64,000 nt of DNA. It comes from Oculina patagonica. Its lineage: Eukaryota. Below, one piece after another: positions 25,850 to 60,137 of the stretch. The position numbers and the translations under genes were made by a program. The notes beneath the pieces are model-generated. The model searched no databases. It was given only the letters and a program-made list of their open reading frames with translations, and was not told the DNA's origin. The first letter of the stretch is position 1, and the number at the start of each line of letters is the position of its first letter. The DNA is taken from positions 24,924,001-24,988,000 of the forward strand of contig NC_135760.1 in the NCBI RefSeq assembly GCF_052425735.1. Direction: 5' to 3'.

Positions 25850-57245
<31,396 letters not shown>

Positions 57246-58466: not shown

Positions 58467-59030
58467 GGCTTTAAAGGTGTTATAGTATGGGATCCACAAA
58501 TGAATGGGTTCCCAAGCCACCACTGAGATCAGTGGGTACATATAAAGGGGATGGAAAATGTGTGTGGGTATTGGGGAAGGGGTGTGTTGTAAGCATAAGG
58601 GACCAACAGACTGCAAAGCAGTCACGTCTGCCACAAGGCAACACAACAAAAACAAAAAATCAAAATTTAATAAATAAATAGAATAAAATAACAGAAAAAT
58701 AGCAGAGTAGGATGTATCAGACAAATTGAGTTAAAACTGAGGTGTGGGGGGGGGGGGTTATATCAGAAAGCTGAGATCTGAGATCTGCAAAATTTACTGA
58801 TAGCTGTAGAAGTCACCGAAAATTTAACTGATATTAAACTTACATTCTAGCACACCCATCCAGACCATCTTATTAGGGGTGTTTGCGAAAGGAGTAACCC
58901 CTGGTTACGATTTTAATTACCTGATCATAGTGGTTAGGTGGTAAGACAACACTGCAAGGGACCGCGAACGATAATGCTGCTATTCGTAGGATCTACTGAG
59001 AGATCTGATCAGCAATAAAATGAAATAACA

Positions 59031-59358
59031 AACAGCTGCAAGCAAGGCTGACCATATACGTGAAAATAGGCTTTGCGAGACAACACCACGACAACACAAC
59101 ACGTGATGTGGCAGCGCGTGATTCGGGGGACAAGTAAGTTCAAAGTACGGAACTTGATACAGTGTACGGGTTATTGGGCAATTTATTTGCGTTGGCCTTT
59201 GGGCTGGCGTCATTTAGATTCGCTACACCGCGCTGATGAGTTCCAATAAGAACGAAACAGCTGTCCGCGGTTGCAATCCTGCTGTATCGGTTCCAGTCGT
59301 GGTGTTGTCTCGCAAAGCCTATTTTCACGTAGTATGGTCAGCCTTGCTTGCAGCTGTT
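59031..59358. mobile_element. Penelope-like pseudo-LTR / retrozyme-like fragment with inverted arms
   Basis: ~62-bp near-perfect inverted repeat (59031-59092 vs 59296-59358) enclosing the hammerhead. Confidence 0.7.
59227..59271 (+). ncRNA. Minimal type I hammerhead ribozyme
   Basis: ACCGCG-CTGATGA-GTTC caataa GAAC-GAAAC agct GTC-CGCGGT: stem I 6 bp, intact core, stem II 4 bp, short stem III with palindromic loop, GUC cleavage triplet ending at 59265. Confidence 0.85.
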
Positions 59359-60137
59359 GGTTAGGTGGTGACTTGAAATGCACTGTGCTCAACCACCAGT
59401 TTAGAGACTTGGCAGGCGGAGCCATGCAAGTTCAATTCCTCAGCAAATAGCCAACTAGTCCAGAACCTCCCATTGTTACAAGTAATATTCTCATCAAGTT
59501 CATGTTCCTTTTGCAATATCGTGGTTCTTCAGTATAGTATGCAGGCTCTCTTGTCTCTTTGCCCAAAACGTTTCAAAGCACTTTTCAATTTTTTGCGCTT
59601 TAAAACTGTTGCAAAGTTGAACGCATGGTCCATTTTAAATGCAGTTACAATACTGGTGTGCAGCATGTAGCCTCGTTTACAAATCTGTCACGGCCTCCTG
59701 GCGACTTCTGCTACGCTAGTTTCCAGGACCATACGATCATTTTGGAAAGTTACGTAAATTGGGGCAGACAGTTCGAAGCTTCTCTTCGTACATTATTTAT
59801 TTTTTATTAAATTTATTTTATTTTATATTTTTGCTGGTAAGAGCCTAAAAATATAAAGTTCAGCATATGGACGTTAAACAATCTGTATATTTTATCCAAT
59901 TCGATCATGTAGCCGTCTCAAAAAGAAGTCGGGGTGACACGTGAGGCTAGGATTTAAAAAAAATTTTTTGGGATGCCCCCTGTCCCCCTCCCCCGTGAAG
60001 TTTTTACGTCATATTCCGAGCGGCGGCTCGACGATCGAGCACGGCTGTTTTATCTATTGAATCAGAAAAAAAATAGAGATTGTTCCCAAACTATAAGGAT
60101 ACAAATTTTTTCGTTATAAACGAAATTATACACATGT

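Follow-up and report, generated by a model that had tools for sequence, protein, structure and literature searches.

The window analysed here is a stretch of 64,000 nucleotides of the Oculina patagonica genome (assembly GCF_052425735.1, contig NC_135760.1, positions 24,924,001 to 24,988,000 of the forward strand). It holds exons of an adhesion GPCR and, beyond them, a type I hammerhead motif embedded in a short insertion (Table 1). Since the GAIN, GPS and 7tm_2 exons all lie upstream on the plus strand (49908-55114), the hammerhead is downstream of the receptor and on its strand, as the initial annotation of this DNA had stated. About 4.1 kb separate it from the end of the last recognisable 7TM exon; the initial annotation had given about 2 kb from the last exon.

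Several other repeats occur in the window. Upstream of the GAIN exons, an ORF fragment on the plus strand (47774-48178) matches zf-RVT with 26.4 bits, just under the cut-off, and is likely to be the remnant of a non-LTR retrotransposon. A repeat of about 170 bp with a tRNA-like core is found at 27024-27189, 39490-39658 and 25010-25066, the first two copies being 93% alike (Rfam tRNA 41.3 and 34.4 bits; ARAGORN tRNA-Thr(GGT) at 27058-27133); a tRNA-derived SINE or a tRNA-headed retroelement is its probable identity. Large ORFs at 44.0-46.9 kb were considered as a nearby RT and rejected. Pfam finds nothing in them, and they consist of hexanucleotide microsatellites, (TTGTGC/GCTCGT)n over about 0.6 kb (44227-44859) and (TGCTTG)n over about 1.2 kb (45629-46847), which are stop-free on both strands and mimic ORFs of 265-456 aa.

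Table 1. Features of the receptor and of the insertion in window positions, with two examples from an autonomous Penelope-like family elsewhere in the genome. E numbers are positions in the family E unit as measured on locus L004; L numbers denote genomic loci.
Feature	Position	Strand	Basis
GAIN exons	49908-50315 and 51235-51591	+	
GPS exon	52089-52466	+	
7tm_2 end	54845-55114	+	
Left target-site duplication, 12 bp, TGGTTAGGTGGT	58931-58942		direct repeat; TSD scan; empty-site contig
Partial copy B, E288-441, with tail and T1 end (...TTAGTCTTAC)	58943-59092	-	97% to L004:1699-1852 reversed
Left inverted arm, part of copy B overlapping copy A (E288-355)	59026-59092		inverted repeats; predicted hairpin
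Junction (5 bp) of the head-to-head partial copies	59093-59097		gap between two BLAST segments
Partial copy A, E90 to about E350-355, T2 terminus, with hammerhead	59098-59357	+	99% to L004:1501-1766
Type I hammerhead motif	59227-59271	+	RF00163, 37.7 bits; compensatory changes in stems I/II between paralogous families
Right inverted arm, part of copy A overlapping copy B	59296-59363		inverted repeats
Right target-site duplication, 12 bp, TGGTTAGGTGGT	59358-59369		direct repeat; TSD scan; empty-site contig
Autonomous Penelope-like family, examples	L063:1483-3141; L066:2088-2140	- (L063)	

An Rfam scan of the whole window, a check that the initial annotation had proposed, returns a single hammerhead, which matches RF00163 (Hammerhead_1, type I) over model positions 1-45 of 45 (E 6.6e-6) and exceeds the gathering score of 34 bits. 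Direct reading gives ACCGCG / CUGAUGA / GUUC-CAAUAA-GAAC / GAAAC-AGCU-GUC / CGCGGU, in agreement with the letters, the complete core and the fully paired stems I and II first described. Helix I (ACCGCG/CGCGGU) has 6 bp and helix II (GUUC/GAAC, loop CAAUAA) has 4 bp. Every nucleotide of the core (CUGAUGA ... GAAA) is there, including the cleavable C after GU. Helix III is formed by 2 bp (A-U, C-G) and the tetraloop AGCU, 2 bp and a tetraloop being the usual arrangement in invertebrates (PMC7229834), and it sits within the self-complementary palindrome ACAGCUGU; the tiny, self-complementary stem III of the earlier description is therefore the same structure. From these letters a cut would be expected after C 59265, i.e. 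between 59265 and 59266.

For the isolated 45-mer, thermodynamic prediction gives -14.3 kcal/mol for an alternative fold, in which the core GCUG is paired with the CAGC of helix III, as against -8.1 for the hammerhead fold; the isolated window monomer is predicted to favour this inactive fold. The local fold of 59205-59295 is no better than that of shuffled sequence (z = 0.32), a value to which no weight is given, as the hammerhead core is beyond what nearest-neighbour folding can represent. Thermodynamic predictions are uninformative as to hammerhead activity. The palindrome is predicted to form a self-duplex of -11.1 kcal/mol, and the RNA of the full insertion a hairpin of 60+ bp (z = -12.4) with the hammerhead in its 203-nt loop.

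The initial annotation had placed the motif in an inverted-repeat cassette, a unit of about 330 bp (59031-59358) with 62-bp arms. The arms are real, but their length is now 67-68 nt with one bulge (59057-59092 pairs with 59296-59331 over 36 nt at 100%, and 59026-59056 with 59333-59363 over 31 nt at 97%), and both the unit and the architecture have to be revised. The true inserted unit is 58943-59357, 415 bp between perfect 12-bp direct repeats, and it belongs to a family whose unit is longer (see below). Nearly all genome matches to its right part begin exactly at window position 59098, and this partial copy A is 99% identical to more than 25 other loci in addition to the one listed in Table 1. 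The left part (58941-59092) aligns with these loci too, in reverse orientation, over a stretch that overlaps the right arm and runs beyond it. The order in the window is RC(E288-441), 5 bp, E90-355. As read from these alignments, the inverted arms are the 68-bp overlap (E288-355) of two head-to-head partial copies, attributable to one insertion event, and no terminal repeats. Only partial copy A includes the hammerhead; partial copy B is without it. Because the ends of the insertion share microhomology with the target, family E homology is readable 2-6 nt into the duplication.

In one run of a close relative, 58930 is followed directly by 59358 on a contig that lacks the intervening 427 bp, with 12 letters common to both sides. 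The same contig has 4 differences in 179 nt of left flank (about 2% divergence). It is an unoccupied site with a single copy of the duplicated target. Since the close relative has this empty site, the insertion is recent, and it is not a conserved part of the receptor gene. The 99% identity to sister copies likewise indicates a young age. Labels of the public runs in which the locus occurs refer to corals ('coral metagenome' and coded organisms).

A search of the organism's own genome (529 Mb in 1951 contigs, 14 of them large) with 58940-59380 found 140 matching pieces at 85-99% identity. Together with about 54 hammerhead cores, these answer the question of copy number raised by the initial annotation: the element is multi-copy. 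The unit of this family, termed family E here, is about 520 bp, as measured on the tandem L004:1412-2382 (period 520 bp, 1.87 units). On this ruler the hammerhead occupies E219-263 and the predicted cut falls at E257/258. Tandems of the family have a spacing of 512-520 bp (L004; C3:9306443 and 9306955) and comprise about 2 units each.

The anatomy of family E was read from 30 fetched loci, of which 24 insertions were judged independent. Fifteen insertions are head-to-head composites, and 11 of these 15 have one T1 and one T2 outer end. The T1 terminus lies at E436-446 (...TTAGTCTTAC) and the T2 terminus at E349-364 (...GCAGCTGTTTGTTA), with a one-sided tail of about 86 bp from T2 to T1. Other insertions are 5'-truncated single copies ending at T1 or T2, or partial tandems. 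Target-site duplications are clear in at least 11 sister insertions and have lengths of 10, 11, 12 or 14 bp. No ORF of at least 130 aa was found inside the copies at the 30 loci, in keeping with the earlier remark that no RT ORF is nearby, and neither RT nor EN was found within 1.5 kb of these 30 copies. Linkage to a PLE RT/GIY-YIG ORF, for which the initial annotation had suggested looking, was likewise absent over that distance. The ORFs that adjoin family E copies are host genes (cytochrome P450, Branch enzyme, apextrin C-terminal domain, F-box/WD40 and RmlD-like epimerase). An Rfam scan of 20 sister loci found hammerheads only, many of them in divergent pairs, and no tRNA-like module.

The possibility that the 5' ends of copies cluster where the hammerhead would cut (E257/258) was also considered and dropped, as a single copy fits. 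This copy, L016 (G000:C7:12155705-12156323), starts at E259, 1-2 nt from the predicted site. A template whose 5' end had been made by the ribozyme would leave such a start, but this is one example and may be due to chance.

The 33-nt hammerhead core of family E has 44 exact and 10 one-mismatch occurrences in the genome, as against 0 in the reversed control. Because 6 of the 10 mismatches, including that in the second unit of L004, hit core nucleotides, individual genomic copies of family E appear to be decaying neutrally. The wider architecture CUGAnGAG-N12-CGAAACAGCUGUC occurs 315 times in the genome with many helix II variants (control 0), and a search with RF00163 gave on the order of 7x10^4 rough first-look candidates, the cut-off being passed by 71 of the 74 that were scored. 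The window hammerhead is one of thousands in the Oculina patagonica genome. A higher-scoring hammerhead family with 554-bp spacing shares about 70% identity with family E over 200-320 bp.

Conservation of the hammerhead stems can be followed between four paralogous families: family E as represented by the window, family 2 (L032; helix I ACUCUG/CAGAGU, helix II GACC/GGUC), family 3 (L059; GCAGUG/CACUGC, GUCC/GGAC) and family 4 (L066; GCCAUG/CAUGGU, GGCC/GGCC). Between these families, both-sided changes are seen in 6 of 12 pairs of stems I and II. Pairing is found in 98.1% of the stem I/II cells, as against 21-43% when partners are slid by 1-3 columns, and the covariation score of the two stems was reached by none of 500 shuffles. 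Helix III and the core, including the core columns CUGAnGA, GAAA and the cleavable C, are constant throughout the alignment. The sample is small (9 sequences from four lineages in one genome), but the direction is clear: to judge from the alignment, helices I and II appear to be kept by compensatory changes between paralogous families. Hammerheads within family E are identical or carry single uncompensated core mutations, and for that reason selection on individual copies is not visible. According to the initial annotation, a lack of stem I/II covariation across genomic copies, together with a lack of cleavage as monomer or dimer, would speak against a self-cleaving element. Such covariation exists between the paralogous families but not among the identical copies of family E.

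The sequence at 58943-59357 is very probably one recent insertion of the protein-free family E, with its unit of about 520 bp and its type I hammerhead, which would have been mobilised in trans in the manner of Penelope-like elements. This supports the essence of the initial annotation, namely a non-coding hammerhead retroelement of Penelope-like or retrozyme kind, without an RT of its own and with a dimer-capable palindromic stem III. A single event would have inserted two partial copies whose 5' ends meet inside the insertion and whose 3' ends face outward, T1 (E~441) being the end of one copy and T2 (E~355) that of the other, and would have duplicated 12 bp of target. The RNA of the element may have been reverse-transcribed from both 3'-OH ends of a staggered break in the target by an enzyme supplied in trans, presumably from an autonomous Penelope-like element with an RT and a GIY-YIG nuclease. 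During the life cycle of the element, the hammerhead would serve to release unit-length RNA from multimeric or tandem transcripts, acting as a monomer or in two copies paired through the palindrome ACAGCUGU. We infer three parts of this scheme: the mobilising enzyme, the two-ended priming and the catalytic activity of family E.

Penelope-like insertions are marked by strong 5' truncation and frequent partial tandems (pseudo-LTRs), by an adjacent inverted 5'-truncated copy that often forms inverted repeats, by a tail of 30-40 bp at one end only, by duplications of variable length and by hammerheads in the pseudo-LTRs, and their integration mechanism has been termed undefined (PMC8557442, PMC4209133). 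Family E has each of these hallmarks, from 5' truncation, partial tandems and the adjacent inverted copy to the one-sided tail, the variable duplications and the hammerhead, the last of which lies inside the repeated part as it does in the pseudo-LTRs. However, family E differs in having no RT/GIY-YIG ORF and a longer tail (about 86 bp vs 30-40 bp).

The genome contains 860 GIY-YIG candidates. Loci L061-L068 represent an autonomous Penelope-like family with RVT_1, a zinc finger and, at the C terminus, a GIY-YIG (ORF read in L063), and share a conserved minimal hammerhead about 65 bp before the 3' end (GCUC-CUGAAGA-AGGCC..GGCC-GAAAC-GUA-GAGC). Its bulged helix II and 4-bp helix I were described for Penelope-like elements in 2014 (PMC4209133). 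No hammerhead above the Rfam threshold was found in 20 GIY-YIG loci; the minimal hammerheads were found by a looser regular-expression scan. The hammerhead of this Penelope-like family (bulged long helix II, 4-bp helix I, ACGU without a loop) is of a different type from the classical 45-nt motif of family E. As candidates for an autonomous partner of family E, the GIY-YIG loci L061-L080 match at the hammerhead level only, in a search that covered one Penelope-like family out of the 860 candidates. Because no sequence-matched autonomous element was found, it is from anatomy that we infer the Penelope-like mobilisation of family E.

Some further observations were made at the GIY-YIG loci. Two copies of the L061-L068 family form an inverted pair at C7:6.718/6.721 Mb. 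A hammerhead module in L066 and L068 was considered as a link between Penelope-like elements and the classical hammerhead and was rejected, as it belongs to a separate hammerhead repeat family of about 219 bp with a tandem spacing of 339 bp and the hammerhead GCCAUG...CAUGGU (L066:994-1246; G000:C4:35532430-35532987). In L066 this module lies between 39-bp perfect inverted arms, directly beside a 5'-truncated Penelope-like copy, and its position in L066 and L068 is probably due to nested or adjacent insertion. Loci L069-L078 (e.g. G000:C5:25725695-25728916) are ten copies, 100% identical over 2.6 kb, with a 1371-aa open frame that encodes a superfamily-1 helicase/AAA and a GIY-YIG domain, with no RT domain in the part read. 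These do not look Penelope-like and have the appearance of a very young mobile element of another kind.

Part of the same anatomy could also be produced if family E depended, in the manner of a SINE, on a LINE that encodes an AP or REL endonuclease, in which case twin priming would give the head-to-head arrangement, with the hammerhead as incidental cargo. L1-type target-primed reverse transcription, too, typically leaves duplications of 10-14 bp and inverted 5' segments, the window also contains the zf-RVT fragment of a non-LTR RT (47774-48178), and the comparison with L061-L080 yielded no sequence-matched Penelope-like partner. However, a poly(A) or microsatellite tail is absent from both 3' termini, T1 and T2. 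Moreover, partial tandems combined with a one-sided tail of about 86 bp and a hammerhead are the published Penelope-like signature (PMC8557442, PMC4209133), and hammerhead-bearing Penelope-like elements are abundant in this genome. Mobilisation by a LINE is therefore regarded as improbable.

The position of an intact hammerhead core downstream of the receptor exons and on the same strand might suggest a co-opted ribozyme that processes read-through transcripts of the adhesion GPCR or terminates them; the cutting of such read-through RNA had been raised in the initial annotation. This is highly unlikely, given that the empty site in the close relative marks the insertion as recent and that the copy, at 99% identity to its sisters, shows no locus-specific change. 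The hammerhead also stands alone, its stem III has 2 bp, an inactive fold is predicted to compete with it, and no reads support transcription through the site: at the locus, a small-RNA run gave 4 partial matches and a poly(A) run gave 0, contig depth in runs of uncertain type ('RNA?') fits DNA copy number, and the runs yielded no usable sign of read ends at 59265/59266 or of circular junctions. These read data do not speak against expression as such. The single hammerhead copy, located downstream of the receptor gene, is most likely an inert passenger. In runs X12 and X16, which come from a related coral, high-depth contigs over 58951-59321 pass from 59034 to 59157 through 17 letters of other sequence and also join 59186 to 59260; these joins suggest that a variant of the family, rearranged or shorter, is abundant in that coral.

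Scarcely any credence can be given to a MITE or foldback DNA transposon with the 67-bp inverted repeats as its functional ends and a chance or captured hammerhead, since the near-perfect arms, the flanking direct repeat and the very stable predicted hairpin that recall such an element are outweighed by about 85 bp of element outside the left arm, which is hence not terminal, by sister copies that vary in junction, arm length and orientation and are in many cases tandem or single, by a duplication length that is not fixed (10 to 14 bp), and by a hammerhead architecture far above chance (315 vs 0 in the control).

A Penelope-type insertion of family E thus remains the preferred account, and it can be set beside several known systems. 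The animal non-LTR retrozymes, first worked out in Acropora millepora, where there are more than 6000 type I hammerheads in 16 families, carry the classical metazoan hammerhead, and Penelope-like elements have been proposed as their likely mobilisers (PMC7229834). Like family E, they are non-coding and multi-copy, occur in tandem copies and coexist with Penelope-like elements, have target-site duplications of more than 4 bp, and share the type I architecture with helices of 6 bp (I), 4 bp (II) and 2 bp plus a palindromic tetraloop (III). In contrast, their units measure 170-400 bp (220-240 bp in the published coral retrozyme) vs about 520 bp, and their arrays reach up to 62 units vs about 2. 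Family E insertions also differ in being mostly head-to-head composites, and the family is known here from DNA. For vertebrate retrozymes, derivation from Penelope-like elements and mobilisation by them have likewise been argued in a 2026 preprint (Li, Clavereau & Pollet 2026, 10.64898/2026.07.22.740005). That argument is based on the phylogeny of pseudo-LTRs, whereas the support for family E is insertion anatomy in a cnidarian, with no matched partner. A weak helix III with a palindromic loop is shared with the dimer-dependent hammerheads of newt satellite 2 and other amphibian sequences and of schistosomes, in which, according to Forster et al. 1988 as cited in PMC4209133, such loops let two motifs form one extended helix III. 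As represented in that citation, these hammerheads lie in long tandem satellites with a partner always near, whereas the window has one sense hammerhead only.

In corals, protein-free retroelements with hammerheads are a familiar and common class, documented by the thousand, and the copy in the window is genuine but ordinary. For annotation, the lesson is that where inverted repeats frame a ribozyme in this genome, they should be taken as a composite retro-insertion and not as a terminal-repeat unit. The modest value of family E lies in its young, clean copies, whose ends, duplications and head-to-head junctions can be placed to the exact base, and which make it good material for the study of Penelope-like integration and of the dependence of retrozymes on Penelope-like enzymes. 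The two termini, T1 (E~441) and T2 (E~355), are 86 nt apart, and the insertions have 10-14-bp duplications with microhomology at the ends. It is conceivable, if rather doubtful, that the head-to-head T1/T2 pattern records the Penelope-type integration step itself, with both target strands priming on multimeric or circular RNA at two preferred sites. If this is true, then because the family E hammerhead is of the classical retrozyme type, the pattern would supply direct anatomical evidence for the mobilisation of invertebrate retrozymes by Penelope-like enzymes, and two-site priming would explain the long-unexplained inverted pseudo-LTRs and the one-sided tail.
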